From Hyaloraphidium curvatum SAG 235-1 (taxonomy: Eukaryota; Fungi; Monoblepharomycota), in contig JAIVFI010000022.1 of the NCBI GenBank assembly GCA_025558095.1, forward strand, positions 642,475 through 706,474: a DNA stretch of 64,000 nt, in the 5' to 3' direction. The notes under the pieces were generated by a model, which saw only the letters and a list, made by a program, of their open reading frames with translations, had not been told where the DNA came from and did no database searches. Position 1 is the first letter of the stretch. Each line of letters begins with the position of its first letter. Shown one piece after another: positions 43,176 through 64,000 of the stretch. The translations under genes and the position numbers were made by a program.

Positions 43176-44570
43176 CTAGCGACGCCGAGTCCGCATGCGC
43201 CTGGGGAGACCCGTCGGGAGCTGGAGACCAACGCGATCGGCATAGGCGCGGACGATCCCTATGGCGCCGTGCAACATGTCCAGAGGGAGCTTGGTCGTAC
43301 GAGCGAAGCCCCGCCACTTGACCTCGAACTTGAGTCCGTGACCCTGGCCCTCGTGGCCGACGATGTCCTCGACGGTGTACTCCTGCTCGTTCCCAAGCGC
43401 GTTCTCGACCTCGATTTCCTCTTCGAACTCGTTCACCGGTTCCGAGAGATCGAGCTCTTCACCGGCGGCGAGCTCCGGGGCGCGTGCGTTCCACGAGCGC
43501 GCGTTGAAGGTGGCCGACTCCCAAGGCTTGTAGCGCGCCAGCCGGTCCACATGCACAGTGGTGACGTGGTCGGTCTCGTAGACGTGTCTACACTTCCAGG
43601 TGAGCTCGGTGTGGCCTGACTCCTCGATGCGGTAGGGCCCAAGATAACGAGAGACGAACTTGCCCGGCTCGCCCTTGCGCGGTCGTTCTGGTCCCCAGAT
43701 GAGCACGAGGTCGCCGGGGCGGAAGGTAATCGGAAGCCGGGTAGCGTTGGCCTTGGCGTTCCGAGTCTCCGCCGCTGCGGCCATCTTCTCGGCCACCAGG
43801 TCGTAGGCCGCACGAAGCTGCGCCACGAGCTCCACGACGTAGGTCCGCCGGCGCTCATCCTCTGTCTTCTTGTCCTCCTCGTCGCTGGCCCGCAGGTGCA
43901 CTGGCTCGCGAATCTCGGTCTCGTCGTAAAGTAGGTCGAGCGGAATACGAGCATCCCGACCATGCATCAGAAAGAACGGAGTTTCGCCGGTCGTCGCGTG
44001 GATGGAGGTCCGGAAGGCAAAGATGACCCCCACGATGTCCTCGTCCCATGTCTGGTAGTTCTTGGAGACCGCTGCGCTCAGGGCGTCGATGATCCACCGG
44101 TTCGGGCGCTCCGCGAGGGAAGCCCTGGGATGCCCAACCGTGACCAGGCCCCGGTTGATGCCGAGTAGCTTGAGCAGGTACTCCATGTAATGGTTGTCCA
44201 GGTTCGAGGCGTTGTCGTGGTGAATCCGCTTCGGAAGACCGTGCTCGAGAATCCATCGCGTATAGAGCAGCTTCGCCGTCGTCGGCCCAGAGAGGTCCGG
44301 AGTCGGATACGCCGCGACCCATTTAGTGAACGGATCGTAGACGACGAGAAGGTACTTGTTGTCGCGGGGCGTGGCCGGATTGATCTCGCCGATGTAGTCG
44401 ATGTAGATGTCCTCGTTGGGACCTGTGAGAGGAACCGATTTCAGTAAGCCCTGGTTCGATACCGAAGGCATCTTCCGGGTCATGCATGTTAGGCAGGCTC
44501 GCGTCCAGCGGCGAACGTCGTGCGCCATGCCGACCCAATATACGCGGCGCCGCAGATTGCTGTACGCCCG
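43176..44570 (-). CDS. Gypsy integrase with GPY/F motif and chromodomain (5'-truncated pol)
   Basis: YW.GM..DV...CLTC, IYIDYIG, IHHDNA, LAERPNR (DDE), TTGETPF, YLGPYRI, EYTVEDIVGH...VKWRGF. Confidence 0.92.
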   Translation of the reverse strand, partial: RAYSNLRRRVYWVGMAHDVRRWTRACLTCMTRKMPSVSNQGLLKSVPLTGPNEDIYIDYIGEINPATPRDNKYLLVVYDPFTKWVAAYPTPDLSGPTTAKLLYTRWILEHGLPKRIHHDNASNLDNHYMEYLLKLLGINRGLVTVGHPRASLAERPNRWIIDALSAAVSKNYQTWDEDIVGVIFAFRTSIHATTGETPFFLMHGRDARIPLDLLYDETEIREPVHLRASDEEDKKTEDERRRTYVVELVAQLRAAYDLVAEKMAAAAETRNAKANATRLPITFRPGDLVLIWGPERPRKGEPGKFVSRYLGPYRIEESGHTELTWKCRHVYETDHVTTVHVDRLARYKPWESATFNARSWNARAPELAAGEELDLSEPVNEFEEEIEVENALGNEQEYTVEDIVGHEGQGHGLKFEVKWRGFARTTKLPLDMLHGAIGIVRAYADRVGLQLPTGLPRRMRTRRR

Positions 44571-44825
44571 CCCTATGAGAAATTTCCATGGGAAAGCCCT
44601 GGGAAACAAATGGGAAAACCCGTCCCGCATGGGACTTGCATGGGAAAAGTGCTTGGACATGGGAAATCACATGGGCTGGCATGGGAATATTCCATGGGGA
44701 GCCTAACCCCTAAGTCCGGAGAATGGGATTGGCCATGGGAATAGTATGTACCAGGCCGTCCAGACCCAGGTGGTTAGGGCTTGGAAGCACAGGACATGGG
44801 CTGGACATGGGACGCCTCATGGGAT
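44571..44825 (+). repeat. Left terminal and subterminal CATGGG repeats
   Basis: More than 10 (C)ATGGG units, many 10-13 nt apart. Confidence 0.85.
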
Positions 44826-45122
44826 CCCTGAGCGACAGTGCACGAACTCGAAGAGTATCGCCTTGTTCATGACGTTCACTCACTGGCATTACCATCCTAG
44901 AGGGGCCGCAGGCTTCAGATGGATGCGCATTCAACCCGTTCGCCATCTCATTGACATCCGTTTTGAACTCGTTTGAAATCTGTTTCATATCCCTTTTTAG
45001 TCCGTTTTCTATCCGCTCGGGCATCCTTGCCCGTCTGCATGGATCCGCTCGTCCGATCGCAAGGCGGCGATCAGCCGAGGTCCGAACCGTTTCTCGGGTC
45101 CCGGATCTTGCCCACCGTGACC

Positions 45123-46199
45123 ATGTCGGTACGCGCTCTTCGGAGCTGCCCACCGGAGGTTCTGAAGGAAATCGCGCGTTTCCTGGACCCTAATGCGCGA
45201 GTCGCGCTCGCGAGCACGGGCAAGGAGATCCGCGCCGCGGTTTTGGACGTGGCCTTGCGGAGCGTCCGACCCCCAAGCTCGCGCACAGCTGCCGACTACT
45301 TCGATTCGGTGGTGCACGAAGGCACGGAGGAACTTATTCATGTGGTCACGAGGCACTTGACACTGGATCCCCAAGTTCCTTTTGGCAACGACCCCGCCGC
45401 CCTTCACCCTGAGCTTCAGTTCCGCAAGATAGCCCTGCCGCACCTCCACAGCCTCGCCATCGGCCTTAATCCCTCATTTCGCGCGCGAGAGCTGCGCCTT
45501 CTCCTCACAAGGCACGACCCCGCGGAGCACCTAAGGCAGCTCACCCTCACCAACGTCGACCTCGCCTTCCTTCCGTCCCTCGGGATGTTGGAAGTGTTTG
45601 TCTCCCGCTTGTCGTACCTGGAGATTGGCGTAACCGGGGGCGCTAAAGTCCTGAAAGGGGTTCTGGGATGCGTTGAGAAGGCGCTCTTCCACGGTCTCGG
45701 GTCGTGGGGTCTCCAAACATCGGAGAGAGAGCTTGCTTGTGAAATGCCCACTGAAGTGGCGCGTCGCTTGACGACGCTGAAGGCCGGGCCGCGCGTTTTC
45801 AAGCAGGTCTGCAACGCTTGTGGCGATTCGGGGACGGAGCTTCGGAGGCTCGCACTTTCGGGGATCTCGGGCTGCCGGAAGCTACTACGGGTGCAGAAAC
45901 ACGTGTGGTCGCTCGCGTTGCCGACCATGGAGTCTGACAACTACGCGAGGTTTACGCTTCCCAGGAACGTGGAGTACGTGGAGATCCAGACAATAATCGT
46001 GTCATGCCGCAGTCCCATGCACGAGATTCCGGACAGCCACGTGCTTCCTGGCATTATGTCTTTGCGGAAGCTCAAGCGCGTGGAGGTGTTAGGGTTCGCG
46101 GTCAAGACGCTATCCGACCGAGCCTTGAAGCAGCGTGACCTCGAAACTCAGTGGTGGCAGGTGACTCTTCCGGCGCGTTTGCGGAATCGCACTGTTTGA
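45123..46199 (+). CDS. F-box/LRR-like protein (transposon cargo)
   Basis: LRSCPPEVLKEIARFLDPNARVALASTGKEIR; LxxLxL repeats; C-terminal ETQWW. Confidence 0.75.
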   Translation: MSVRALRSCPPEVLKEIARFLDPNARVALASTGKEIRAAVLDVALRSVRPPSSRTAADYFDSVVHEGTEELIHVVTRHLTLDPQVPFGNDPAALHPELQFRKIALPHLHSLAIGLNPSFRARELRLLLTRHDPAEHLRQLTLTNVDLAFLPSLGMLEVFVSRLSYLEIGVTGGAKVLKGVLGCVEKALFHGLGSWGLQTSERELACEMPTEVARRLTTLKAGPRVFKQVCNACGDSGTELRRLALSGISGCRKLLRVQKHVWSLALPTMESDNYARFTLPRNVEYVEIQTIIVSCRSPMHEIPDSHVLPGIMSLRKLKRVEVLGFAVKTLSDRALKQRDLETQWWQVTLPARLRNRTV

Positions 46200-46407
46200 A
46201 GTTGTCGGCATGTGATTGGGTGCAACGTAGTGTTTTCCAAGCGCAGTTGTGATAGAAAGCGAACATGTGCGGATCGCGAAACAGAATCTTTCCGGATCGC
46301 ATACAGACAACAAGGTCGACAACGAACAGAAACCCTCAGGAAGTCATGCAGATCAATAGTGTGACACAAACGATAGCTCGCCATTCGTTCCGACATCTGG
46401 CCGACAC

Positions 46408-47661
46408 ATGAAAGAGTGTAATCATGGGCTTCAGTGGACTCACAACTGTGCGGGACGGGTCGGCGCAGTTTTGGAAAAAACACAAACACCTCCCATGCCC
46501 ATGCAGAGCCCCAGGGAAACAGCGACCATGGCAAAGACGCTGAACAGTTCAACTGAGCGCTCACGAGTGCTGCGGGCACGGCGGGCCGAGGAGCGCCGCC
46601 AGGTGCTGGAAAAGAAGCGCCTTCAGCAGCGCGCCCGCCGCGTGGTCGCACGGGGCATCTCGCCGCCCGTGGTCTCGGCCGACGGGACTGCCAGCGACAC
46701 GGAAAATGGGGCTTCGACGGACACGCAGACGCCGGAGGCCTGGGATGGCCATCGAGCGTCTCCGGCCCACCAATTGCCCCGTTGCGCCCGCGCTCCTGGT
46801 GGCCGGGACCCGCGCGCTGTGCTGCAGGGACCTGCGGACGACCCCCGCCTGGTTGCGTTGCCTGCTGTCAACGAAGCCGGAGGCATCGGATTCGGACTTT
46901 ACGTCGCCTGTCCGTTGTGCCCAATGGCGCACTTCGACAGCTCACCGACGGCCACGTGGCGCACTAGTGCCGCCGAGGCGCAGCTGATCTTGCAGCGGTC
47001 CCTTTGTGGGCGGTCTGCCGCAGGCACCGCGTTCCGCAAGGGCGACGTGCTGGGCACCTACAAAGGAACCACGTGTGCGAAGAGCTCATGCGGGGACTAT
47101 GTTCTTTTCATTCAAGCTTTGGGATTTTCGGTTGACGGGGCCAATCGAGGTTCCATCCTGCGCTTCGCCAATTATGCACAGGACCATCAGAAGCGCAATG
47201 CGGTGTTTTTGGGCAAGCCGGTCAAGGTGGAGAACCTTTGGGGGGCCCGAGTGGTCGCCTCGCGCAACATTTCCTACCATGACGAGGTTCTGCTTAACTA
47301 TGCGTCGCCCGGTTTCATTGGGAACTCCATGGTCGCGCGGCTGGAACACAAACTTGACGAGAAGCCCACGCCGTGCAGGTTGCCGACACCGGTGGTGAAG
47401 GTACACCGAGTCCGGGACCCTGGTGACGGGTTCGGCCTGGAGCTCAACGTCACGCGTCAGAGCGCGTACGAAGGATGGGCACGCAGTGGACGGCGCACCC
47501 GCAAACCGAAGCGGATCTGGATCCGCGAGAGCGAGGTTCCGGAGTCCGACGCGGAATCGCGAAGAGTGATCTCCGGCTTTCTGAAGGGGCACCGGCCCAA
47601 GCAGCCGACTCGCGCAACATCCGCGAGGTTGTTGGGGAAGGCGAAGAAGATCGATGTATAG
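46408..47661 (+). CDS. SET-domain protein with possible degenerate chromo-like C-terminus (cargo)
   Basis: GIGFGLY/AGTAFRKGDVLGTYKG, VDGANRGSILRFANY, NAVF, VVASRNISYHDEVLLNY; probable in-frame intron. Confidence 0.8.
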   Translation: MKECNHGLQWTHNCAGRVGAVLEKTQTPPMPMQSPRETATMAKTLNSSTERSRVLRARRAEERRQVLEKKRLQQRARRVVARGISPPVVSADGTASDTENGASTDTQTPEAWDGHRASPAHQLPRCARAPGGRDPRAVLQGPADDPRLVALPAVNEAGGIGFGLYVACPLCPMAHFDSSPTATWRTSAAEAQLILQRSLCGRSAAGTAFRKGDVLGTYKGTTCAKSSCGDYVLFIQALGFSVDGANRGSILRFANYAQDHQKRNAVFLGKPVKVENLWGARVVASRNISYHDEVLLNYASPGFIGNSMVARLEHKLDEKPTPCRLPTPVVKVHRVRDPGDGFGLELNVTRQSAYEGWARSGRRTRKPKRIWIRESEVPESDAESRRVISGFLKGHRPKQPTRATSARLLGKAKKIDV

Positions 47662-47867
47662 GTTCTTCTTCCTAAAGTCTGCTTGCCTTCCGCATGCAGT
47701 CCGCTTTTTGTCCGCATCAACTCTGCATCACATCTACTTGGCGTTAGGTCGCCGGCGTCCAAACTAACCACCTCTCTCTGCACGTGCCTTTGGAGGTGTC
47801 TCTTAGAGACCCGTGGAGGTTCCAAAGAACCGATTCGGAAGGCGAGGGCGACGCAAAGTACGAATTG

Positions 47868-49839
47868 TTAAGAAAACATTTCGCCGGTCTCCGTAATGCC
47901 CAGCCAGCACCTAAGGTGCCCCATCCGTGCTTGCTCGTCGTCATATGTGCCGCCTGCCACCCACTGGTCGAGGGCTATGTAATGATCAAGGCCGGCCTCC
48001 AAAGGGAACGAGAACACCTCTCTCGCGATGCCGTAGAGCTCCGGGAATCGCTCGCGGTTTTCCTGTGACAAAGGGTGCGTCAATCGGCCTTCCCAGGCTG
48101 CCCTCTGGCGAAACACTACGCGTCCTACCTTCCAATAGCCGGGGATGTCGATCAGTTCCTCGCGGTTGGCACTGACCGACTCGTTGATGTAGACCACGGC
48201 CTCGCTCTTGCCGTGGTTCTGCCGACGAGCCTGTACCGCGAAATCCTCGATATCTTGGAGATGGTTATGCCTAAGTGAAGCGCGCGGCTTGGTGTACGGA
48301 CGCGCGGTGGCGACGGGAGCGGCGTCGTTTGTGATCGCGCTTGCTGCTGAAATGAGCATTTCCATGGCAGTCTTCTTGTACGATTCCAGTTGCGACCGGA
48401 TGACGGCATGCTTTAAGGCGTCTTGGACGGCGGCAATCTTTCGGGACAGCCACGTGAGCCTCATGTTCGGGTTAAGCACTGCCCAGGACCGCAAGATCAA
48501 TAGGAGCCCTCGAATGGACCAGTCGCGACAACGCTGCTGGAAGCTCACCCATACAAAGGAGGACATAACGCTCGTTCGATTCAATTGCAGACTTGAGTTC
48601 CTTGTCTGCCGTACTTAGGAGCTCGGCAGCTTGCTCCAGCTGCAGTTTTGGGAGGTCTGCAAGGCCGCGACTCTTGGTCCGGTCAATCAGATCCACTTGG
48701 GCATCATGCAATAGGACTCGTAAGTCAATCAGTGCCGCTGCAATGAGCCCGCGTTGATGTAGGCGTCGACCGTCGTCCCTCGGAGTGTCCCGCAGATCGT
48801 AATCTTGCACAGCTTCCCAAGCGTTGACGAGCACTTGCCTTGGCGAGCAAGTGGTGAAACGAAAATCGAGTCAGCAAGCATCGACATGCACGCATACCGC
48901 GCGCCCTCACGCACCGGAGATGAAACATAGTCGCTGGTGGCGGTAGGGAGGAGGTCGGGTAGGGCATGGCCTTTTGCGCTTTACGGACGAGCTCCCGCAC
49001 CCGGAAGAGCCACGGCTTGATTCCGTAGCCGAGAAGCTCGAAGCGGTCATGCTCGAGGCGTGGGGTCTGCTGACCACTGAGGAAGCCAGGGGGGATCGCC
49101 ATTGTAATTGTTACGATCTGCACGCGGGTCGTTTGTCGGTGACACAATGCGGGAGTTGCCCCAGCAGGGCGCGTGTCCTACTTCGTTCTCAAGCAGCGCC
49201 ACGTGCCTGGCCAGGGGCTCGTCCACAATCATGCTCTTGATCATGTCGAACGAAACGCTCCCGTTGCGAGCGATTCGCTCGCCAACGACAGCCTGAAAAA
49301 GCTTCCAATCCTCGGACAAAAACTCGACCACGAGCTTGAGAGACGTTGGGTCTTTGACGTCCATTGCCGTACCGTCATCGGCGACGAACGAGACCAGGAG
49401 ATGGCCGGAGCAGGTCTTGAGCAGGCTGGCCACGCGCCGATGAACCTCGCTGACCAGATCCGCCACAGTCGGCAGAGGAACGTCCTGGCAGACAGCGCGG
49501 ATGAGGCCACGCACGGCTCCATTGTCCGGCGCGACATCCGACAGCCGGCGCCCCATCGACACGGCCAGCGAGAGCAGCGCCTGTTGCACATTGTTGTCAG
49601 ACTTTCGAATGGAACGGGATGAGAATCGGCCGCACTTTAACGAGATCCTCCTTGGTTCCGGCGGCGCGGGACTGTGCAATACCGCAGGGTTTCGGGGATG
49701 CGACAGCCGTGTCGCCGCTGCTGCCTGTGTGTGCTTCCTCGCCGAATTCGTCGACCTGACTCGTTTGTCGCGTTGGGCCAAGGGGGGGCGCCGCAGCCGC
49801 GCCGCCTTCTTCGCCGGCACCGTCCACCGAAGTAATCAT
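47868..49839 (-). CDS. Hypothetical multi-exon cargo protein
   Basis: Chain of minus-strand ORFs with GT-AG candidates between two 11-bp arrays; no recognisable domain. Confidence 0.45.
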
Positions 49840-50054
49840 TGAACCGTTTTGTTGGGTGGCGAAGAGACCTACACTGCTGGTCGATGGGCTCCAAGGGAGT
49901 GAGGCGATCAGTGAAAACAGGGTTAGGAGTGAAAGCGGACTACATGCAGATCGCAAACAGACACAAACTAGGACAAAACGGACTACAGTCAGACGGATAG
50001 CGGAGCAACGTAGCTGCGATATAGATTCCGCCATAGGCGTTCGGCAGCACATCG

Positions 50055-53000
50055 TCACACCGAATCCGGCTTCTTGATCCGCTTTTTGAGTTCCCTAGTC
50101 TTTTGTTTCCTCGCCGCACCCAGAACCTTCTCCCTTGCACGAGCTTCTGGACTCACATAATCCCGGGGATCAATCATCCAGTTGAGGTCGAGAATGTAAT
50201 GCCATTCCCTGGCCATCGGGTCCGAACCCCAGTCGGTGGGCTCCAACGCGGTCGAAGCCACGGTCGGGTCACCTACCCAGCGCCTCAAAAGCCCGACGAG
50301 GCGGTCCAGGCAGGTGACAGGCACTAACATATGTTCCATGTGAGAGCCGTCTCTCTGAAACTGGAAGTTTTTGATTCCCCACCCCGCCGCCGCGTCGAAA
50401 CCGGCCGCCTTGATGACCGACATCCACGCAAAGGCATGCTCCTCGCCCTGCACTTCGTGCACGATGTAGTAATGCACGAAACCAAAACGTTCGACTCCAG
50501 GATGATCCGGATCGTCGAACGCAGCCATGTGGTTGAGGCGCCGTGTCCGGTTGATTGCCTGGACCCGGTGAGACACCAAAGGGAGCCGTCTCGCGGGCTT
50601 CCCCGAAGACATCACCGAGCCAAAAGTCGCCTTGCCCGGTAGTTCAAGCCTGGCAAACTGGCGAAAGGCGCGGGAGATGTCGTCTTTGGCAAGATACCCC
50701 CCCCAGGTGCCACCCTTTCGGTAGTATCGGAGGAGCGCTTTGATCTGAACCTTTTTGAGGCCCTACCGCCGTGTGCGGGGACGTTGTTTGGATGCTTAGT
50801 GCCCCAGAAAACGGTTATTGCAAGCAACCAACCTCTTCTTCCCGGTGTACCCGGTACGGCCATCGCAATTCGAAGCCTGTGCCGGTGTAGATCTTTCCGA
50901 ACTGTTTCCGCTGGAGCTTTCGCTGGTCGATGAAGGCTGTCTCCATTCGAGGGTCCATCTTCACCAGCTCAAGCCGAGTTTGGCCCTGAACTTTGCCGGC
51001 CATGTCTGCTATGGGCGCCCGGCGGTTGTCGACCAATTGTTGCAAAACGTTGATCTTTCGCTCTGTTTGGAATTGGGACGTTGCCCACGGAGCCCCGTTA
51101 CAATCGACCCGCTCCGCAAAATGCAGGAACGTGTGCAGATTGTACGTGCAGACGTCACCCATGACCTCCTCGGATCGATCATAGCACGTCCTGAGCAGCA
51201 GAGCGAGGTGGGGGCGGCGGGTGCGTGTTACTGGTAATACTAAATGCTGAGAATCACGCACCCACCCCTCGCGCCAGAGAACGTATCTTAAGCAAGCCTC
51301 GTGCAAAAGACCGGTATCCACGCGGTGCTTCGCCGTGAGCTGTCCAATTCGAACAAGCCACGCGATGCCCTCAAAGTCCTCGGGGAGCAGGCGATCATGG
51401 AGGAGGGGAACATAGTACAGTTTCAAGAGGGTGAACCACTCCTCCGTCTTGTACCCATTCTCGTGGACCAAGCTGCGGGGAACGCGCCCGAAACAGCTTG
51501 GGAGGAGAAGCGCCGAAGCCACGATATCATGGTCCATCTCCTCGATCTGACGAGGTGTCAGACGGCATCTGGCGGATGGAGTGTCCCTGGAGTTGACGGC
51601 CGTGTTGTACTCCTGCGTCGTCATCCCTTGGCAGTGTTGCGAGGAATCCGTGATGTGGGTGGGTTTGACGTTGATCTTGTGCTTCTTGGCCATCTCCTTC
51701 GCGAACTTTTTCCATTCTTTCTTCCCCATCTTCGGCTTCAGTGTTCTCTGGTAAAGGCGTTGGACGTTGCCAGCAACCTGGTGCATCCGGTCGTACGCGA
51801 GGCAGTGCGGAAGCCGCATCGCGCCGAACGCAGTGCGCGTGACCGGGAGACCCTGATTCGAGAAGCAAATGTCGAACACGGAGCGACGCATGATACCTGC
51901 GGTACCAGCAGCAGCAGGAGGCGAGCGCCAAGTCAGGTACGCGAGCTTATCTCGCCGCCGCCGGTGCACGCACCCGTTTCCTTCTGGATCTTGTCAATTG
52001 CCGCTTTGGGAGCCTCAAGTCGGGCGTACGTCGAAGCATACGTCTCGACAGTGTACATCGGAAGGTTCTCCGGGTCGTAGTCGATCCGGCCTCCACGCTT
52101 CCCGTAGGCCTCACTCAGCTTCACGTTTGCCACGTCCGGCAGGTGAAGGCACGGGCACCGCCCGTACCCAACCAATCCACAGAACATACAAGATACGGTC
52201 GCGTTGTGTCCCCGAGACCCTGCCATCTTCTTGATGTGCGGCGCATCTGCTTGCACCATGTACGCGTGGCCGCGCATAGTAAAAGTGACCCCGTCGGACG
52301 CATCCTTGACCCCGGGCACACCTTCTGCCAGCTGCTGCAGCTCCTCCCGCAGCGGGCGGATGACCGACTCGTGATCCCACTTCATCCCACCGGGGAGGAG
52401 CATGCAGAGGTGCTGACCACCATCAACAGTTCGGATGCCGGGCGGGAGGTTGGATATCTTGGCAAGCACGGGTTCGAACGTGTTCTTCGCCCTGTTATTG
52501 TGGTCGGATCAGTCCATCCACACGGATTGGATGGTAGGATGAACTCACTGCTTGAACATTTCGGCGGGATCACCGCTGATCTCGAGCCAGACGGTGCGGG
52601 GATCGAGATTTCCAGAGTCGTCATTCGCGAATCCTTCGTCGATCAGTCGCTGGAACTCCGTTCCGTCAAATACGTCCCCAACGACACGGCCTGCTGCTGG
52701 GCGCTGCTGTGACGGCTGTGACTGCGGCTGCGGCTGCAGTTTCTGCTTTCCCTTCCCTTGTTTTCCCCCCTGACGCGCATGTTCCTTCTCTCGCTCGGCA
52801 GCAGCCTGCTGCTGTTCGATCTCGTGCTGCAACCGCCCCAACATCTCGGTGAAATAGCCGTACCACCATTTGAGTTCTTTAGCCCGGCCCAAGTGGCCGA
52901 ACATGGCTCGCAGGACGGGGATTATGGGGAAGTAGAAAGCGTACTTGTGTGCTGTACCAGTGTCTCCACGGCGGTCGGAAGGATGCCTGAGGTATCGGGC

Positions 53001-54047
53001 AGCTTTGCAGATGGGGCAGGCAACGGCCTTGGCCAAGTCCATGCCACTCCTGCTGTCAATGCCATGGAAAAGTACGCATCCGTTGCGGCAAACATGATGT
53101 CCTGTGGGTAGCGCAATAAGGAGCCGATCACGCACGGTAGAGAGAGTGGTCTCACTCTCGTAAGCATAACCCCCTGAGAGTGTGGCAAGCCGCACCCCGG
53201 CCATGTAGCGGGACACCGATGCATCACCGAGAAGGTTGGTCATGAAGTCGGTGTAATGGTCTTCTGTCCCTTTGTATTCCACGTGAAGCCGTTCCGCGGT
53301 GAGAAATCGTATTACGTGCTCGTCGGACTTGAAGCTCGGGTGAGCCGTCTGGATGGAACCGCTGCCCTGGAAAGAGAAGAAAAAGTCCTTGGCATTGTCC
53401 GCCGCTGCTTCCTCCTCCCTTTTCCGGTGTTCCATCCGCCGCCGATGCTCCTCTTCGTTTGCCTTCCTCCAGTCCTCCTGGGATTCCTCAATTCCTTGAA
53501 GAAAGGCCTCATCATCGCTTCCGTAGTCCGATTCTGCGAAATCCGACTCGTGGAAATCGTTCAGTTCCGCGTCGGGTTCCGTGTCTGAGTCTGATTCCAG
53601 TGCAGAGTCGGATTCCGATTCATGTGCAGATCCGAAGGCAGAGTCCGAAGCAGACGTCTCGGATCCACTATCCGCAAAGTCGGAACCAGCCGTCTCGTTT
53701 GTCTGGCCCGCAGGCGTGGTCACGTCCGGAGCCTTTTGCGCCGGATCATGGATGGGAGAAGGGTCGGCGACCTCGCCGGGGGGCGACGGTGCAAAGTCAT
53801 CAGCAGATGCACCCCACGTAGAGGCTGTGAGGACTCTTCGCTCGGCGGAATCGTTGGTATAGTGTTTCCGTGAAAACCACGCTTTCGCCGAGAAGTGCGT
53901 CGCCAGGAGATCACCAAGGGCCGGATCCCCGTCCGCGAGGGAGCCCCACTCGTGGCACACGCCTCTCTCGTTCACGTGTTTCTTGATGGTTCTATTCAGA
54001 TGGGCATGCGTGCCACGACAGCCTGAACAAGGGCACCGGCTTCTCAT
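50055..54047 (-). CDS. CACTA/EnSpm Tnp2-family transposase, multi-exon, apparently intact
   Basis: N-terminal CPCSGC..H; HVCRNGCVLF..CPICKAARY; YFPIIPVL; DVFDG; ISGD; NLPP; QADAP; GHNATVSCMFC; YDRMH; YKTEEW; NLHTFLHF; GAPWATSQFQTER. Confidence 0.92.
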
Positions 54048-54281
54048 CGGTATCAGCGCACAGAAAAGGGGTCGGATTGTGTGCCTCGAGAAAACTAGCG
54101 CCGGCCGACGAGAATGTGAAACCTAGCCTCAAACTGGTAGGTTATGGGATTGGGAAGCAAAGCGGATGGCAAGTAGATAGTGAGCAGATCAAAAGCGGAC
54201 TCCATGCGGACACAAAACGGTATCGCAGCGGATCGCGTCTTTGCGGGGCTCGCCAAACAGACTCTGGTTCTCTGGAAAACT

Positions 54282-55085
54282 ATGTCATCCGAAACCTCGT
54301 CACCGGCGGCGGTCGGCCCGGCCGAGCGTCGCCGGCTCCGCCGCGAAGCCGCTGGCAAGACCGCGGGCGCGCGTTCCGGCGACGAAGAGGACGCGGAACC
54401 GCCGTCGAAACGGCGGCTCAGGAAAAAGGAGACGGCTCCCGACGACACGCAGACGGACCTTGAGCTGGCGTTGTTTCCCGACTTGCGCCGAACGTCTGCT
54501 GCGCTTGGTGGCAACGCCCCCAAGGAGGCCGCCCGACCGGCAAGCAACGGCAGCCGCGGCTCGAAAGCGGCAGTTCCAGGACCGGCCGGGCCGCGGCGCT
54601 CTGATCAACGCGGCCGGGCGGTGGCCACGGTGAGCCGATGGCTGGATCTGGCAGCGGTCGACGACGACGCGGGACCCGGCGCGTCCCCGGGTGATTCGGC
54701 CTACGAAGACACCCACGAACTGGACACATCCTCCCCCGGAGAGGTGGGCTCCCCGTGGCGGAACTCGCCCTCGTTCCACCGCGAGCTGGATGCTCGCAGG
54801 GCAAAGGAGGAGGCGAAAAGAACGCGGGACGATCAACGGCAGGCGCGTTGGGGGCGCGGAAGCCGCTCCACACGAGGCGCGGGAGCCTTTGGCACCGGCG
54901 CCCCGCCGTACCTCCCCTCTTCCGATGGAATCGATCGGATCTCATCTTCTGCGGCAAGCAGCTTCGATTGAAAGGGAACCCGCTGCGCCGGGCACGCCAG
55001 CCCTCGTTGGAGCGCAGCACCCGCATCGACGGACAGGTTGGCGAGCCACGCACGGTGGCCATCGGCATAGGCAAAGCAAGCTAAG
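54282..55085 (+). CDS. Hypothetical basic/disordered protein, divergent from the transposase
   Basis: ORF from ATG 54282 with NLS-like PPSKRRLRKK; 3' end uncertain. Confidence 0.4.
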
Positions 55086-55318
55086 CTACATTGTTGGTTA
55101 TACTCCCTGTACAAATAGGATTACCCAACAAGTTTCGTCGGACGTGTTCTGGGCGCCATCTGCTGTGATTCCACGTCGCGTTGCCCCGCATCGGTTCGGT
55201 AAACGCTGCCACCAGAAGCCGGACGACCATGGTAGCCAACCGAAAGCATCTCCCGGATTGGGCACACCCTCCTGCGAATCAGCAAGACGATTGCAGAGGT
55301 GCCAAGGGGGAGCCTACC

Positions 55319-56221
55319 TCAGATGATGTCCAACACTATGTCCTTTACCAAATGGTGCCTGTACTTGGGAACTTCGCTCTGCCTGATCCCAGCGCCTTTG
55401 TACCATGCCTCCAGTCTCTTTTGAACGATTGCTGCATTCCACGGACCCCAAGTGTGGGGCCCTCCTCCTTCCAAGGTGAGCGATGCGAACAGCTCGACGT
55501 GGGCCATAGCAAACACCATGCATGCAGACCCGTCGAGCTGCTTGGCGTCGCCGACGTCCAAATCAATGTCCAAGTACGATTCCTCCTTCGCCACCTCGTA
55601 GCCCTCGATGCGGAGGATCGAGTGCACCACCTGTTCGACGCCTCTGGCATCCCGAAGTACCCCTGCCCGTGAACCAGACCGCGAGAGGAGATCCAAAGCG
55701 AACGTGAAGGTGCCCACTCGTCCCGTGCCGGCAGTTGGGTCGAAGAAGTGGGCCATCGACGCGACAAAGATCCAATGGGACCTTTCCTTGACAAAGAGCG
55801 GCGCGAGGAACATCCAGCAGCGTCGTGAAATGGCGAAGCGCGTTTCGCTGCGCACATGCTTCTCTTCGCGGCCGACGCCGTGCTCGTATCCCTTCGCGCG
55901 CATGTTCTGGCGGACGTATCCCTCGACGCCCACCTTCCGCCACGCTTGGTAAGCGTTGCCGGGGTTCCCCGCGGAGATGTCGACGGCAAAACGGGTCAAC
56001 TGCCCGTCGAGAAACACCACTCCGGGAAAGTACTGGGCCCTGCGCTCGAGCCACCGTTGGTAGGCTTCGTCGCCTAGCCAGGTCTCGGGCTCGAGGGGCC
56101 GCACGAGCTCCGAAACCCCAGGCTCCCGGGTTACCTTCGTGAAAACGAATCCAGTCACTGCGCCCCTTTCGTCGGCACCTAGTCCCCGATCCCAGGGTTC
56201 GTTCCACCGGAAGTTCGCCAT
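55319..56221 (-). CDS. Ulp1/SENP-like C48 cysteine protease (cargo)
   Basis: LEPETWLGDE, APLF...SHWIFV, ALDLL, KQLDGSACMVF give the His-Asp-Cys triad and the oxyanion Gln. Confidence 0.8.
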   Translation of the reverse strand: MANFRWNEPWDRGLGADERGAVTGFVFTKVTREPGVSELVRPLEPETWLGDEAYQRWLERRAQYFPGVVFLDGQLTRFAVDISAGNPGNAYQAWRKVGVEGYVRQNMRAKGYEHGVGREEKHVRSETRFAISRRCWMFLAPLFVKERSHWIFVASMAHFFDPTAGTGRVGTFTFALDLLSRSGSRAGVLRDARGVEQVVHSILRIEGYEVAKEESYLDIDLDVGDAKQLDGSACMVFAMAHVELFASLTLEGGGPHTWGPWNAAIVQKRLEAWYKGAGIRQSEVPKYRHHLVKDIVLDII

Positions 56222-56376
56222 GGCCCCAGATGGTACGTCTCGAGAACCCGACCTTAAGAATTTGATGTGTCGTTCGTTCGCTGCTCATCCCTTTTCGTTC
56301 CCTTTCCATTCTGCTTCTTTCCCGCAACCGGCTTCTTTCCCGCAACCGGCTTCTTCCTCCGCTCGCGCTCGACGCG

Positions 56377-58513
56377 ATGCCCCCCAAGGGTGCCGCGCCC
56401 GCGCCGGAAGCAACGACGCCGCCGCAGCGGCGCCCGAGGCCGCGGGTCCGGGACGTGGTCACCCCGGGTGCCCGGGTGCCTTCTCCTGCAGCGGGTACGC
56501 GCGCGAGACTCGCCTCCGGCTGCCACTGCAGTCTTTGAACATGCGTCTATACGGGTGCGCAGACCAACCGGCCCCCACGTCGCCCAGTCGAAAAGCCAAG
56601 TCCAAGCCGCATGCGAACGCGTCGCTCGCGGTCAAGGCGAACGCGCCCAAGCAGAAGAAGGCCAAGTCCAATCCTCGGGAGGGTAAGCCACGGCCAACAA
56701 CGGCGTTGCGCGCCGTCTAACGCCTTGTCACGACCGGCAGAGGACCCGTCAGGCGGGCCGCGCGAGCCGACGGAGCCGGCCAACGCGGTCAAGAAGACGA
56801 AGGGCAAGGGCAAGCAGAGAGAGGGTTAGCCACGCCCAGCAGCAACGGCGTCGCGCGCTGTCTAACGCCTTTGTCACGACCGGCAGAGGAGCCCTCCGGC
56901 GGCCAGGACGACCCGAAGGATCAGGCCGTCCCGGCGGACGAACCGGCGAACGCGCTCGACCTCTTAAAAGCGACGCTGGCGAGGCAGCTCGCTAGCAAAG
57001 AAGTTGAACCCTGCGACGTTCCCGAAGCGGCCGGCGGCGGCCCGCACCCGGACATCGTTGGCCTGTTCGACTACGTGGGTGTCTCCGAGATTCCCCAACG
57101 AAGCTAGGCCACCACTGATTTCACTGCTAGCTCGCCGAAATCACTACAGACTTCGACACCAAGGCTTACGCGGCATGGATGAAGACCGAGTTCAAGCACA
57201 AGCGAGTCCGGTTGGGCAGTCTGGATGAACGGAGGGCGAAAGCCATCTCGCAGGTGGGCTTCAGTAAGCGGTGCCTTCCGGCGTCGGCCAATGACCTTCC
57301 CTTGCAGCACATCGACAACTACAAGAAGGAGCGCAGCAGCAAAGTCATCGAAGAGCTGGACCTGCTATACAAGGCCGCTGATAGTCGCGAGATAGTCAGC
57401 AGAAAGTATGGGGGCCAGCGGTATTTCAAGGCGCCGGTGGTCCGTGCGGGCGGGCCGGTGCGCCCCATCGTTATGGACTTTTTCAAGGATGTGGGTGTTC
57501 CACGCACGGACCCTTGGACCGGAGCCGGGCCATGATTGACTCCGCTGCCAGCTCCTCGAGCTCACGGACGATGCCGAGATGGCCTCTTGGCTGCAAGACG
57601 TCGTGAGCAAGTTGGCGTCGGACGAGACGGTGGTTTCGGGGGTGGACGACGACCAGCAGAAGGCCATCTTCGAGGTGGTTTTCTGGGCAGCGTCCACCGC
57701 CACGGGCGGCCACTGACTCCGTTTCCTTGCAGCACATCAAGGTCTACAAGAAGCGGCTGTTGGATGACGACCGGCAGCTCCCCGGCCCCCCGCCGGAGGA
57801 GGACTCCGAGGCGCGCGCCGCGACGCCCCCGGTCGTCGCCCCGCAGCCGCCGCCGGAGGACGACGGGCAGCTCCCCGACCCCCCGCCGGAGGGGGACTCC
57901 GAGGACGAGGATGAAGAGCTCCGCGGGCCTGCTGTGGCAGAGCCGCGGAAGCGGGGCCGTGGCAAAGGAGGGCGGGGGAGGGGACGGGCCGTTGAGACTA
58001 AAGCCAAGAAGCCGCGTGTCCGGGGTAGGCTTACCTCGAACGGCGCCGAGGACGGACGCATCTAACAGCATTTACCGTCCGGTGGACAGATGTGTCGTCT
58101 GCCGGCAGCGCCCCGAAGCCCCAAGGCGACGAGCACGCGCACGATCCGGAGCCGGCGTCCAAGAAGGACAAGGCCAAGGGCAAGGACAAGCGGACGCACA
58201 AGCAGCCCGAGGATGAACACCAAGACGACGAGTACGCGCCCTTTCCGGGGCCGGCATCCAAGAAGCACAAGGCCAAGGGCAAGAACTTGAGATTCCTCGA
58301 ACTCAACCCGACCGTAAGTCCTCGTCCCTCCGGCACGCTTTGGCAAGACCGCTCATGCAGGAGACGTTCTCCGTTGTAGACGGACCAGCTGCAAACCCAC
58401 GTGCAGTCGCTTGATATCCCGTACCGGCTCCTCCTCAAACCGCAGATCAATGCATCGCCGCTCGGGTTCTTCGCCTTGAAGAAGGCGACGCCCGACAAGC
58501 CCGACGCCAAGGA

Positions 58514-58548
<35 letters not shown>

Positions 58549-59638
58549 ACGGGGACGGGGGCAACGGGGACGGGGTCGGGGATGGAGATGGGGTCGAGGA
58601 GCACGTTTGCTTCGTGGTCGGCTGCCAGACGCGGTACAGTGGAACCAGCCAGTTCCACGCCCACCTCCTGTCGGCACACGGGATCAGCTCACGGGACATT
58701 CTCCGGTCGTGGAGGGTGAACTTCGGCGTTGTCGAGCGCACCGGAAGGGTTGGTTGGGACACTTGCTATCGATCTGGCGTTCTTGACCAGTCGCGTGGCG
58801 CATCAGGAGAGCGCTGAGAAACTGACCAAGGAACAGAAGATGTCCCTGAGTGGTGCTATAAGGGCTGTCACGCCGTCGCAGGCATGTCTCCGTGGGCCGC
58901 GCATCACGACCCGGCCCGCTTGACTGACAACTTGGCGCCCGAAGGCGGAGCTCCTGACGGCGGCGCTCGACATCACCGATCACGTTGCTCTGGACGCGAG
59001 CAGCAAGGTCGTGTACACCATCGACAAGTTCGACAAGCCCGTGGACCCGCCGTTGCCATCCAAGGTCGTTGTCCGGCTACCGAACATCGAGGAGACGGAC
59101 GGGCGAGTCTTCTTTCGCCTCGTGCTGACGCACCATATGACCATCGAAAAGGTTATGGGTTTCCTGCTTTGCACCGGCGGACCTCCGCATTGACGCGAAT
59201 ACTTCCAGATCGTCGAGATCAACGAGACCGAGGTCGCTTTGATTGGGATGGTCACATACCCTGGCGCACTTCTACATCTCGCGAACGAATTCGTCGCCAA
59301 GTACGACACCCGCGAGCGCCCGCCCGACGCGACCCCGGTGCAGGTAGAGGTTGGGCTCGACTACGTGTTCAACGATTCATTCGCGACCCACTGCTTCCGA
59401 GTACGTCATAGCGCGTTGGTGCCTCACCCGGCAAGTTTCCTAACCCCTTTCCCAGGTCACAATTACCGCCGAGACAAGCTGGCTATTCCCGGGCTTCGAA
59501 GTCGACCTCGAGGAGCCGGCGTTCCGGGTGGTAAATGCCAAAGGGCTCAGTATTGTTAGCTTTCGCGGGCGACGGAAAGCAACGAGGAATGAGGGACGAT
59601 CGCTTGCGCGTGCGATCAACTTGTACGAGGATGATTAG
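56377..59638 (+). CDS. Multi-exon cargo protein with a C2H2 zinc finger and internal repeats
   Basis: CFVVGCQTRYSGTSQFHAHLLSAH (C-x4-C-x12-H-x4-H) near 58608-58679; many short introns; exon chain approximate. Confidence 0.55.
58523..58592 (+). repeat. (GACGGG)n coding microsatellite (Asp-Gly)
   Basis: Visible directly. Confidence 0.85.
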
Positions 59639-59933
59639 GTGTCTTTTCGTACCGTGCAATGGCAAGTAGACGGTCTTTCCTTTGTCCGACCGAAACAGAA
59701 CTAATGTGGACTGAAAGCAGATGCAAAGTGGACCAGTGGCAGCTAGCAAACGGACCTGGCCCCCGAATCGTTTATCCAAAGCGAGATGAACGTAGACATA
59801 CTTGATTGGCCGGAAAGGACGCCTTTCACCTCCCGCACTTCCTCTTACGGATCCCGAATTCGGCGAATTGGCGCGCGGCGCTTTGGCGTGAGTCGCGCAA
59901 ACCGTCCGCGCGACCACACATCCATATCCCGGA

Positions 59934-62900
59934 ATGACCGCCGCTGGATCACCGTCCTCCGGCGCGCCGTCGGCAGTCAGCGGCGCGCCGGCCCATGCGC
60001 CGCTGATCCAGCCCTGCTTGGCGCTTCTCAAGGCAATCCGTCTCGGGGGCACCAAACAGGCCGCACACGCCGCTAAGCTTGCAGAGCTCACCCGAGGCTC
60101 GGAGCTCGCGCTCGGTGGTCAAAGCGCATTTGCACTGTCGTTTTGCGAGGTCTTCCGGGCTCTTGATAGCGAGCTCCAGACGGTCCTCGCGGATCTCGCG
60201 GAGTGCTGCGGTGCCCTCGTCCGGGAGGACCCACGGGTGCCGGCAGACCCGCTTGTGGGCAAGATCCAGCTCCTGCAGTCAGCTTTTGATTCAGAAGACT
60301 GGCCTGCGGCCTTCTCTGCCACCGAGGATCTCGTCACAAACAAAGAGCTCTTCGCTTTGGGGCAGCATGCTGCTGCGCTTGCCGCCTTCGACGAGGTATT
60401 CGCTCTGCTGGGCCAGCACGCATCCGAACAAGCGCTCGATATTATGGTCAAGCTTGTGGACGTTTGGGAGTACCGGAATCGCGCCGAGTCCTCAGAAAGC
60501 CTGGGGAAACCCTCCTCTGAGTCGGATTCCGTGGCCGGCTCCCAAGACCCGCTCCCCTTCACCTCACCGCGCTACAGCGGCGCCGCAACCATGTATCCGT
60601 TCGCTAGACAGGCCGTGGTCACCGCCCAAACGGTGGAGGACGCACCCTCGAGCATGGAGCCGCAGTGTGAGACCCCGCGTGTTTTCGCTGTCACAACTGC
60701 TGACGTCGCTGTCCCCGTATCAGTCACCGCCGAGGGAATCATCTGGCCCGACTTCTTCACGCTCCGGAAAGCGAGTGCAAAGGAGGACACGGAGAAGCAG
60801 GGGGAAACGCTGGTCATGATCCAAGACATCTTTGCAGCTTTCCATCCGACACCCGACTTGGCCGAGCTGAAGGGCTACATCGCCAAGCCGCGGTACAAGA
60901 CGCGATCTGCGCCCAAAGACGGCAGAGAGAACGGCACTGATACTGGGTATGTGCCGTGCAAGGACCAATGGATTGCAATTGGAGCGTGGATGTTTTTCGC
61001 GTGCCTCGACGAGGACGAGAAGGCAGCATTCGTCTTCAACATCAAGGCTGTGATGGTGCGTTATGCGATGGAGGCTGCTCGGTCTTTGCGCAGTCTTCTG
61101 ACTGATGCCACCGCAGCAGGTTTCGCGGGACGAAATCGGAAACCTCTTCAATGACTTGCGGGACGAAGACGGCAATCTTCCACAAATGAAACACATGAAG
61201 ATCAGCGGCGCGGGGCCGAAGGTTGTTCTCTACAAGAACCGCTTCCAGACCTACGTCGGAAACGTACGTGAACCCAGTGCAGGCGGACTTGGCCATATGG
61301 ATGCGGACTGATCATTCGATCGTTCTCGCTGCAGATGATCAAGAGCTTCCCGTATTTGGCATTCTACGAGGACGCCTGGATCCTGGCAGTGATCTACTCG
61401 ACGCAACGCAGGGGCGTGGCGAAGGCAAGTGCGTGACTTCGCTGTGACCGCAGAGCCTGTGTGCACCTCTCACCAATTGCTTCCCAGTCAAGGACCAGGA
61501 GAAGGACCAGCAGCAGGATCCTGCTGTGGACGGCGACCCACAGCCGTCGGCTTTGGATACGCCTTTTCCGCCCCCGCGCCTGGACAGCGACGAGCAGATG
61601 CGCCTCAAGAAGATCGAGAAGAAGAAATGTGGGTCTTTGCTTGCAGCGAGCACGCGATCGGCACGCACCGTCCGTTCTCATTGCTCGTCATTAGCCAAAG
61701 CCGCACCCCAGCCCGCAACTGTCGCCATGCCCGCAGCCGTTGCCAAGCCCGCAGCCGTTGCCAAGCCCGCACCCGTGCGCAAGCACGCAACCGCGCCCAA
61801 GTCCACCGCAGCAGCAGCCGTGCCCAAGCCCGCAGCAGCCGCACCCAAGTCCAGGGAGGCCAGTGCAGCCGTGCCCAAGCCCGCAGCAGGCGCCCCCAAG
61901 TCCACCGCAGCCGTGCCCAAGCCCGCAGTAGCCGCGCCCAAGTCCACTGCAGCAGTGCCCAAGCCCGCAGCAGCCGCGTCCAAGCCCGCAACCGCGCCCA
62001 AGGCCACCGCAGCCGCACCAAAGCCAGCAGCCACGCCGGAACCCGCAGCAGCCGCCAAGCCCCCGCTCCTCCCGCAGAAGCTGCCCGCACAGAAGCCGAT
62101 CTCACAGAAGCCGGTGAAGGTGGCGTCTGGTTCGGGGATCTCCGCAGCCGGCGCCCCACCACTGCCCCGCGAGCCCGACTCAGACATCCGCGAAGTCGAC
62201 GCCGCTGAAGTGGCGCCGGCCAAGGTCTACCAGACTACGAAAACCAAGCCTCATCCGCCAACGGAGGATCCATTGTACTGGGAGGCTTGCGCTGGCATCT
62301 CGCGCGAGGAGTTCGTTTCGAACTTCATCGACGGAGGTAGGTGCCGCCACCGCACCAATCCCGATAAATGACACCGCGTTCCACGCAAGCAGACGATCTC
62401 GACGTAAACCATTTCCGGGTTTCGGCCGGCAGAATCGTTTACCTGGCGAAATCCGGCAAGCTGGATTCTCTGTCTGGGACTGTGGCATCGGGCGCGTCGT
62501 CGTCGTCGACATTTGATTCCATCCAACCCCTCGCGCAGCTCATCATCAAGCTGTTTCCTTGGGTCCTGGCGAACAGCCCGCGGAGTACCGACGACGTTAT
62601 TCGACTGATTCGCGGGGGACCTTCTCCGAGCCCTCCACGCAGCTCCTCGCCGCGAGCATTGGTATCTCAGGCCGCATCGGATGACCCGGTCGATGGTCCA
62701 TCACCAGCTACCCGTGCGTCTGCGGCCGATCGCAAGTTCTTGACTGATGGCGCCTCTTCCGTTCTCTAGAGCGCTCGGACAGCAGCAGCAACGATTCGCC
62801 CGACGAGAGCGAGGAATCCTCTGCCGAAGACTCCGAATCCGTGCTCGGCGCAAACTTGGGCGAGTCACATGGCCCACGAGTACGCCGTCGTGGAGCTACC

Positions 62901-63262
62901 GTTGACGCTGGTAGGTTGCAAACTCGGGTGCTGGTCAAGTTGCTGACAACCTCCCCTCTCCTTCCGGCCAAGCTACAACCAAGAAGCCGCGCAATTCCAA
63001 GAAGACCGGCTCCACCGCGAACAAGAAGCCGGCGGTCAAGTCGACGGCAGGCAAGTCGATGGCAGACAAGGGAGGACGCGGGAAGGAGAACGCTGATTCA
63101 CGCGGAAACAGTGCGTACGCTGGCTACGCGCGACTGGACGCTGATTGCCACCTTCCAACAGGCCAGCAGAACAGCATCACCGACTACTTTTCCCAGCCAG
63201 ACCCTCCTGAGCGTCTCCCGCAGCGTTCGAACCGGTTCAATGGAACCTTTTCGGGGCTCTAG
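59934..63262 (+). CDS. Multi-exon accessory protein with PKPAAA repeats and a C-terminal PIP-box
   Basis: ORFs 59934-61154, 61105-61311, 61526-62371, 62368-62769 and 63059-63262 can be linked by GT-AG introns; QNSITDYF near the end; could be two genes. Confidence 0.5.
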
Positions 63263-63569
63263 GGACAACCACAGGCACGTGCGGCGGGAGCATGGGTAGG
63301 TAGGCTTGGACGCGTACTGCCCGAGCAAAGGTGCATTGACAGCGGATCGCATGCGGATCTGAAGCAGACGACATGCGGATCTGAAGCAGACAACATACGG
63401 ATCTGAAGCAGACATCAAGTGGATACTTAGCAGAGGAATTACGGGAAGTGAAACGGAGAACGATCAGTAGTCTGGCAGATGTCTATTGGGAGTGCTGGCG
63501 GGGTGTCAAAAGTCATGGGGCCAAATAAAAGGACCGGGCAAACGTTTTCGGCGCCCGATGCCGACCATT

Positions 63570-63862
63570 GTTCCCATGTCAAGACCAATGTCAGAAAAGG
63601 CTTTCCCATGTCGCACACCGCGGTTCCCATGTTTAACCCATGTGGGATACCGCCTTCCCATGCCACGATCCCATGTTGCACACAGGCATCCCATGCGATG
63701 CACAAAGACTTTCCCATTTTGGGCCCCATTCTCGGGCCCTGGTCCTTTCCCCCACCAAGGAAATTCCCATGTTCCCTATCTCAGATTCCCATGTTGACCG
63801 ACCTCGGACCACTGGAATTCCCATGTCGGGCCCCATGTCCGGCCCATGTCGGACCCCATGTT
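63570..63862 (-). repeat. Right subterminal CCCATG repeats (inverted relative to the left array)
   Basis: More than 12 CCCATG units. Confidence 0.85.
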
Positions 63863-63865
63863 CAC

Positions 63866-64000
63866 TTAGGTTAGGTTAGGTTAGGTTAGGTTAGGTTAGG
63901 TTAGGTTAGGTTAGGTTAGGTTAGGTTAGGTTAGGTTAGGTTAGGTTAGGTTAGGTTAGGTTAGGTTAGGTTAGGTTAGGTTAGGTTAGGTTAGGTTAGG
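63866..64000 (+). repeat. Telomere (TTAGG)27
   Basis: Perfect pentamer array to the window end, G-rich strand running 5'->3' outward. Confidence 0.95.

Follow-up and report, generated by a model that had tools for sequence, protein, structure and literature searches.

The Starships of the Pezizomycotina are mobile elements of 20 to 700 kb that carry a tyrosine recombinase (the DUF3435 "captain"). Among plant DNA transposons, CACTA and Mutator (Kaonashi-type) elements carry Ulp1-like protease genes, and the CACTA elements of plants also capture host sequences. Here we describe a large cargo-bearing element from the fungus Hyaloraphidium curvatum, located at positions 44571 to 63865 of a 64,000-nucleotide stretch of DNA (C22:642475-706474, hereafter the window) whose right edge is the end of the contig. 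This segment is one of three copies, 99.4 to 99.6% identical, of a 19,402-bp DNA transposon. We consider it very probable that the transposon is an autonomous and recently active member of the CACTA-Mirage-Chapaev (CMC) clade, to which the CACTA/EnSpm elements belong.

Among the features that define the CMC clade are C(2)C and H(3)H motifs in the transposase (PMC12730594). Termini of the CCC type have been published for animal elements of the CACTA superfamily, including a Tribolium terminal repeat that begins CCCTAG (PMC1636069). A passage of PMC12730594 that draws on Kojima & Jurka 2014 states that HarbingerS and Phytophthora (oomycete) MuDR families carry SET histone methyltransferase genes, and PMC2528002 mentions CACTA/Ulp1 in grapevine.

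Results

Three near-identical copies define the ends of the element

Beginning about 42 kb into the window, the G+C content drops from approximately 70% to approximately 58 to 65%. BLASTN comparison of window positions 44571 to 63865 with the fetched loci identifies a second copy on the opposite strand of contig C26 (114088-94753; 99.44% identity over 19,338 alignment columns). A third copy is present on contig C24, where window positions 44570 to 61394 correspond to C24:665209-682028 with 99.60% identity and the match stops where the contig ends. The last 5 kb of this C24 copy includes many 1-bp indels that resemble contig-end errors. The left edge of the element is sharp, with the first base being identical in all three copies and the flank being different each time.

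An earlier note on this DNA, made from the window sequence, described a unit of at least 19.3 kb bounded by inverted CATGGG arrays. The existence of three copies and the polarity of the arrays uphold this unit, but position 63865 is not its true right end. Rather, the C26 copy extends 66 bp beyond the equivalent position and terminates in TTTCTCATAGGG, an exact inverted match to CCCTATGAGAAA, the left terminus (44571-44582, plus strand). The complete element therefore spans C26:94687-114088 (19,402 bp) and is bounded by a perfect terminal inverted repeat of 12 bp. Of the three copies, this is the one in which both terminal repeats are found. A search of the 31.9-Mb genome with the terminus pattern returned the left end three times and the right end once, whereas a reversed control pattern returned neither.

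Adjacent to each terminus is an array of short repeats. The left subterminal array (44587-44823, plus strand) is composed of 11 CATGGG(A) units in a single orientation. Its counterpart on the right (63570-63865, minus strand) retains 13 of 15 CCCATG units in the window, where the final 66 bp and the right terminal repeat have been lost. For the element as a whole, all 11 CATGGG units within the first 253 bp are forward and all 15 CCCATG units within the last ~360 bp are reverse, with no unit of opposite orientation in either array. The interior density of CATGGG is 0.05 to 0.08 per 300 bp, and the terminal arrays exceed this by more than 100-fold. Strictly polar arrays of this kind are the classical subterminal repeat layout of En/Spm-type elements. 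The concern raised earlier that the left and right arrays might belong to different elements is answered by the complete C26 copy, which ends in matching inverted termini.

The copies reside in three different repeats

The three insertion targets are all different, and all are repeats. In the window, the element interrupts the integrase/chromodomain part of a Ty3/gypsy-type long terminal repeat (LTR) retrotransposon (43179-44570, minus strand; Pfam Integrase_H2C2, rve, and Chromo). Intact copies of this retrotransposon run on past the equivalent of position 44570, reading ...gtacgcccg and then, across the junction, GTGTCGCC, with the frame remaining open. Across the 571 compared bp, at least 13 other copies have 100% identity, and their matches all end at 44570. 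This level of identity suggests that the retrotransposon has been active very recently. The second target is an element resembling a long interspersed nuclear element (LINE), which carries a 1303-aa open reading frame (ORF) with an RVT_1 domain and is present in ~29 copies at 97 to 100% identity (L003:2303-6214 on C26 and other loci). The third target, which forms the left flank of the C26 copy, is a repeat situated ~345 bp from the telomeres on contigs C5 and C33. Members of its family are found at C5:936104-936903, C33:562596-563382, and C21:699299-699724. Given its location near telomeres on at least two contigs, this family is a candidate subtelomeric element.

The C26 copy has repeats on both sides. 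Uninterrupted paralogues of the family that forms its right flank read ...gatcttgatcgCTGatgcccc, the left flank of the C24 copy terminates in ...gatcttgatcgCTG, and the C26 right flank begins with CTGatgcccc. When these flanks are compared with an empty-site paralogue (L010), the C24 left flank matches with 99.8% identity up to the junction ...gatcgCTG, and the C26 right flank matches with 100% identity from the junction CTGatgcc onward. Because the two matches overlap on CTG, a single insertion appears to have generated a 3-bp target duplication, which falls within the 2 to 3 bp that had been anticipated for this element.

Two aspects of this reconstruction weigh against a simple history of transposition. 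The target duplication derives from one insertion only, with its left flank being on C24 and its right flank on C26. Since these flanks belong together as opposite sides of a single insertion, the assembled C26 copy must have the flanks of two insertions, reflecting either a misassembly across near-identical repeats of 19 kb or a real exchange by ectopic recombination. Between the C26 and C24 copies, the first 1.7 kb includes six differences, after which the two agree fully up to the indel-rich end of C24, a pattern that is consistent with a misjoin or with an exchange.

The window copy was truncated and joined to a telomere

The window copy halts at ...CCCCATGTTCAC and is followed immediately by (TTAGG)27 (63866-64000, plus strand), which continues to the contig end. 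The simplest reading of this junction is that the chromosome broke 66 bp inside the end of the element and was healed by telomerase. Because this copy lacks the right 66 bp, in which the terminal repeat lies, it cannot move or be excised as a unit by itself, although we propose that it is still able to express its genes. The same TTAGG repeat is present at the ends of contigs C5 (L013) and C33 (L014). Thus, at three contig ends, the telomere unit in this genome is the 5-mer TTAGG, as opposed to the TTAGGG that is usual in fungi.

The proximity to telomeres invites an explanation in which the element is a subtelomeric duplicated block that spread by recombination or break-induced replication, with the transposase gene being a passenger or a relic. 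Consistent with this, the window copy touches a telomere, the C26 left-flank repeat is subtelomeric on C5 and C33, just three copies exist, and the flanks of the C26 copy derive from two insertions. We nevertheless regard this explanation as highly improbable. A block of this type would not be expected to begin at precisely the same base in three unrelated contexts, or to carry polar arrays together with a terminal inverted repeat of 12 perfectly matching bp. Furthermore, the CTG duplication is defined relative to about 29 uninterrupted paralogues, and the junctions inside a gypsy-type pol gene, in a LINE-like element, and in a third repeat are not those expected from recombination.

A Tnp2-type transposase supports placement of the element in the CMC clade

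The transposase gene occupies positions 50058 to 54047 on the minus strand and was recognized by Pfam matches and motifs in four open blocks (52548-54047, 51936-52508, 50818-51993, and 50058-50762), each of which exhibits coding-like codon-position G+C. Each exon of this gene, and of the remaining multi-exon genes, was searched separately. The first block matches Pfam Transpos_assoc (E 0.002), and the block at 51936-52508 matches Transposase_21/Tnp2 (PF02992; E 9.3e-6, 25.4 bits), which is the sole transposase family matched. In a genome-wide search, PF02992 is matched only by the three copies of the element. All blocks are open in the three copies, in agreement with the apparently intact Tnp2 transposase that had been read from the window sequence.

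A pattern of D...D...CMFC...HTFLH...E is readable in the translations of the transposase ORFs, wherein the catalytic residues were assigned by eye. The exon at 51936-52508 reads ...VQADAPH...SCMFCG..., and the exon at 50818-51993 reads ...NLHTFLHFAE...FQTERK.... The predicted protein thus has recognizable C(2)C and H(3)H motifs, as in the CMC clade. Along the gene, the Transpos_assoc zinc module, the Tnp2 core, C(2)C, H(3)H, and E are arranged in the canonical order. No tyrosine recombinase or integrase ("captain") domain was detected in the 30 ORFs of the element scanned with Pfam. Together with the terminal inverted repeat, the 3-bp duplication, and the Tnp2 match, this agrees with the earlier proposal of a cargo-bearing DDE element that is distinct from Starships.

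Several other superfamilies were considered. The CCC...GGG termini are suggestive of piggyBac, but this was ruled out given that there is no TTAA duplication and that the transposase matches Tnp2. Similarly, hAT, Mutator, and Harbinger were ruled out because the lengths and sequences of their target duplications do not fit.

Three observations argue against assignment to CACTA. The termini CCCTATGAGAAA...TTTCTCATAGGG read CCCTA...TAGGG and not the CACTA...TAGTG (CAC..GTG) typical of the group, the PF02992 score of 25.4 bits is below the curated Pfam cut-off of 28.6, and the largest transposase exon yielded no relatives in a word-indexed protein search. The first two of these are also what would be expected if the element belongs to another CMCT lineage, be it Plavaka, Mirage, Chapaev, or a new one, rather than to EnSpm/CACTA proper. 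In addition, PlavakaB likewise creates 2- to 3-bp duplications (PMC12730594), and animal elements with CCC termini create 2-bp duplications (PMC1636069). However, Pfam models for KDZ and Plavaka gave no match to the transposase ORFs at E values up to 1, whereas Transposase_21 and Transpos_assoc did match, and the combination of a 3-bp duplication with subterminal arrays is the EnSpm pattern. We therefore judge assignment to another lineage to be unlikely. Given that the CCCTA termini depart from CACTA and yet CCC-type termini are published, we file the element as CMC/EnSpm-like and not as canonical CACTA. The available sequence features support a single mobile DDE-type element of the EnSpm/CACTA (CMC) clade.

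A divergent SET-domain protein is encoded by the element

The long cargo ORFs listed in the earlier note exist, and the identities it gave them fared unequally. The SET assignment is well supported, and a PIP-box-like motif is real, whereas the Ulp1-like and F-box proteins are probable only and a C2H2 protein is weak. Of the domain searches that it recommended, Transposase_21 was recovered, whereas SET and F-box matches were not significant and Peptidase_C48 was not matched.

The SET gene (46528-47661, plus strand) encodes a protein of 377 aa (P0001). When examined singly, P0001 matches Pfam SET without significance (E 0.2; 14.6 bits relative to a cut-off of 22.4), has no match among PDB sequences at E≤10, and recovers itself or nothing in word-indexed protein searches. 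An exhaustive phmmer search with P0001 identified 14 remote relatives (P0002-P0015), and these proteins together constitute a small, divergent SET family from metagenomic and eukaryotic contigs. Four of the 15 family members reach Pfam SET at E≤0.1. A profile of this family has 79 matches in the PDB at E≤1, and the 60 that were listed are without exception SET methyltransferases, the best being Legionella LegAS4 (E 2e-6).

An AlphaFold2 model of P0001, generated with the alignment of 15 sequences, has a predicted local distance difference test (pLDDT) score of 82.2. Foldseek comparison of this model with the PDB gave 42 matches at E≤0.001, of which 40 were listed; every one of these is a SET/PR domain, and they include LegAS4, PRDM9, MLL1/3, EZH2, and SETD8. 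With respect to the cofactor and catalytic motifs of SET domains (NHxC..., ELxxxY), P0001 carries RFANY where SET domains have R-x-x-NH, as well as HDEVLLNY in which the C-terminal Tyr is retained, and LegAS4 aligns to it with a similar NF/..NY pattern. Because the family profile, the predicted fold, and the Foldseek comparison agree, the prediction that P0001 is a SET-fold protein resembling lysine methyltransferases is well supported. By profile and fold alike, the closest solved relative of this family is the Legionella effector LegAS4. When all ORFs of the element were compared by tblastn with the contigs that carry two of the relatives (P0002 and P0003), SET alone was matched, and so there is no support for these relatives residing in similar elements.

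Other cargo genes

A gene at 55322-56221 (minus strand) that is identical in all copies encodes P0016 (300 aa), which is probably a Ulp1/C48-like cysteine protease. In a comparison of Atlas language-model features, 24 of the 30 nearest clusters carry PF02902 (score 0.94; 179 of 256 features in common). Its motifs include His149-Trp and Gln228-x5-Cys234, which are 85 residues apart with Asp candidates in between. For comparison, a host C48 ORF on contig C7 has His115-Trp and Gln185-x5-Cys191 separated by 76 residues, and thus the order and spacing are alike. Alignment-based comparisons speak against this assignment. P0016 has no Pfam match at E≤1 and no PDB sequence match at E≤10, finds itself or nothing in word-indexed searches, and has no BLASTP match to the host C48 protein. 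A genome-wide scan with PF02902 recovered three host genes, among which the P0016 ORF is not included, and a single-sequence AlphaFold2 model (pLDDT 32.6) was unusable.

The first cargo ORF (45123-46199, plus strand) encodes 358 aa from its Met, lies within a stop-to-stop ORF at 44967-46196, and is open in all copies. Its product is a probable F-box protein, as judged by Atlas language-model features (score 0.97), for which 15 of the 30 nearest clusters are F-box or F-box-like. An N-terminal motif of the LPxE type is also visible. Counting against this assignment, no alignment-based match is significant, with Pfam F-box_4 reaching E 0.15.

Near the right end, positions 61448 to 63259 (plus strand) encode an Ala/Pro/Lys-rich repeat protein region built on tandem 18/21-bp repeats. 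Its Lys-rich tail terminates in the PIP-box-like sequence QNSITDYF (63167-63190), which is the only PIP-type match in the element. Sequences of this type have a background of zero in about 335,000 six-frame residues. This is thus a real and rare PIP-box-like motif, although its function as such is putative.

Between 56721 and 59556 (plus strand) is a run of short coding-like ORFs with internal duplications that probably represents one or two intron-containing genes. At about 58602-58680, this run includes a weak candidate for a C2H2-like finger, where the match to FOXP-CC is not significant (E 0.026). Three additional ORFs have no assigned identity. One encodes 248 aa (47871-48614, minus strand) and includes an in-frame intron of 66 nt (48063-48128; GT..AG on the minus strand), the second encodes 262 aa with coding-like codon-position G+C and is identical in the three copies (49050-49835, minus strand), and the third encodes 406 aa (59934-61154, plus strand). 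The smaller ORFs of the element have no match in Pfam.

The intergenic regions of the element also share short repeats. A family of dispersed motifs (AAGCGGAC / CATGCGGA and variants, in both orientations) is present in nearly every intergenic gap, including sites at 44936-45017, 47677-47738, 49932-50003, 54161-54220, and 63319-63428. These motifs may serve as a shared promoter, terminator, or protein-binding site. Within the last of these sites is a tandem repeat with a unit of 22 bp (CATGCGGATCTGAAGCAGACAA x3; 63341-63428, no strand assigned), to which GCGGA-type motifs at 47677-47738, 49932-50003, and 54161-54220 are kin.

Cargo genes are linked to the transposase, intact, and in part transcribed

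In searches of the 32-Mb genome with the DNA of the element, no part was found outside the three copies, and searches with the SET and Ulp1-like proteins revealed no paralogue outside the element. Because the parts of the element are found only in these copies, the cargo and the transposase are strictly linked and would move together. Moreover, since the cargo has no other genomic copy, it is neither a nested repeat nor a recent copy of a host gene. The alternative contemplated at the outset, that the cargo genes are host genes unlinked to the transposase elsewhere, is therefore not borne out for the parts searched. None of the long ORFs is interrupted in any of the three copies.

Evidence for expression comes from sequencing run X3, which we take to be RNA, whereas runs X1 and X2 are DNA. 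In contigs from X3, two 66-nt GT..AG introns have been removed, one per strand (48063-48128 and 48720-48785). The former lies in the ORF at 47871-48614 described above. The latter (GTAAGT..AG) belongs to a spliced plus-strand transcript (48374-48863) that is antisense to an ORF at 48475-48870 on the minus strand. Runs X1 and X2 include the unspliced form, and the spliced contig is not present there. Thus, at least two internal regions of the element are transcribed and spliced. A low-depth X3 contig also covers positions 50346 to 50488 within the last transposase block, and variant bases in the X3 contigs suggest that more than one copy of the element is transcribed.

These observations bear on whether the element might be a composite, in which a smaller CACTA element has acquired recently nested elements or captured host fragments (as in the Pack-type capture of plants), such that its collection of modifier-like genes is accidental and non-functional. 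Capture of host sequences is generally known for plant CACTA elements, several of the cargo ORFs lack a recognizable domain, and inverted motifs are dispersed through the interior. We find this explanation quite unlikely given that no part of the element has another genomic DNA copy and that the SET and Ulp1-like proteins lack paralogues. Moreover, every copy retains intact long ORFs, internal regions give rise to spliced transcripts, and the SET protein comprises an entire domain, with a confidently predicted fold, rather than a fragment. A point that tempers a functional interpretation of the cargo is that the synonymous and nonsynonymous differences between copies, at 0.4 to 0.6% divergence, are too few to show selection on it.

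Discussion

Our findings are best explained by an autonomous DNA transposon of the CMC clade whose DDE transposase would cut at the CCCTA...TAGGG termini. By analogy with TnpA in En/Spm, a DNA-binding protein encoded by the element may bind the CATGGG arrays and draw the two ends together, and reinsertion would then proceed through a staggered cut of 3 bp. About seven further genes appear to be carried as long-standing passengers. The window copy presumably inserted into the LTR retrotransposon before a chromosome break removed its right 66 bp and a telomere was added. This case would therefore document chromosome healing within the end of a DNA transposon.

What the cargo contributes is a more speculative matter. 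Its products could alter chromatin marks, SUMO- or ubiquitin-dependent turnover, or replication coupling to the advantage of the element, as the earlier note had suggested. In a stronger version of this idea, the accessory genes would constitute a functional module for self-defense and targeting that keeps a low-copy transposon active and biases it to repeat-rich chromosome ends. The SET protein would write a histone mark, the Ulp1-like protease and the F-box protein would remove or degrade silencing factors that depend on SUMO or ubiquitin, and the PIP-box protein would link the element to PCNA at replication forks. The other repeats of the host genome are likewise very young. We consider this stronger version to be unlikely, and an anti-silencing role for the cargo is speculation. 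Transposon-borne SET, TET/JBP, VANC, and Ulp1 genes have been read in the literature as devices that counter silencing, and few of them have been tested. A low-copy element with intact genes and transcripts, such as the CMC-clade transposon described here, offers a tractable case for asking whether cargo protects its carrier.

Comparison with described systems clarifies which features of this element are unusual. Like Starships, it is a large fungal mobile element with accessory genes, but its mobility signature is the combination of a terminal inverted repeat, a 3-bp duplication, and a DDE transposase. Like plant CACTA and Mutator elements with Ulp1 genes, it has a candidate gene for a C48-like protease (His-Asp-Gln-Cys) beside the transposase. 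Unlike those genes, that of P0016 has no detectable similarity to PF02902 and was assigned by language-model features and motif spacing.

As with the HarbingerS and MuDR families, in which SET genes are interpreted in the passage noted above as a counter to epigenetic silencing, we find a cut-and-paste DNA transposon with its own SET gene. In the present case, this gene resides in a CMC element, and thus in another transposase superfamily, beside further modifier-type genes, and its product has LegAS4 as its closest solved relative. The earlier note stated that SET, F-box, and PIP-box cargo were not familiar from any single element, which proves to be only partly novel because SET-carrying DNA transposons have been published (PMC12730594).

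SmTRC1 and the animal elements of the CACTA superfamily (PMC1636069) share with the present element terminal repeats that start with CCC and insertion into other repeats, and their transcripts are multiply spliced. Those elements differ by creating 2-bp duplications, and no SET, F-box, or PIP cargo has been reported for them.

The closest parallels are to En/Spm of maize and to the fungal EnSpm elements with TET/JBP cargo (PMC12730594). The present element shares with them a DDE transposase of the Tnp2 type that bears C(2)C and H(3)H motifs, has the Transpos_assoc module at its N-terminus, and is encoded by a gene with introns. It is likewise large, contains multiple genes, duplicates 3 bp of the target, and has short terminal inverted repeats next to which lie polar subterminal arrays. 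In contrast, the termini are CCCTA...TAGGG in place of the CACTA...TAGTG of En/Spm, the transposase is too divergent for the Pfam cut-off, and the cargo comprises SET, Ulp1-like, F-box-like, and PIP-box proteins in place of the TET/JBP cargo of the fungal elements. The Hyaloraphidium element thereby adds a fungal CMC-clade example of CCC-type termini, here combined with 3-bp duplications. As a transposon it belongs to a familiar type, and there is precedent for each type of cargo, except perhaps for the pairing of F-box and PIP-box proteins. Their combination in Hyaloraphidium curvatum is a new variation on that familiar type.

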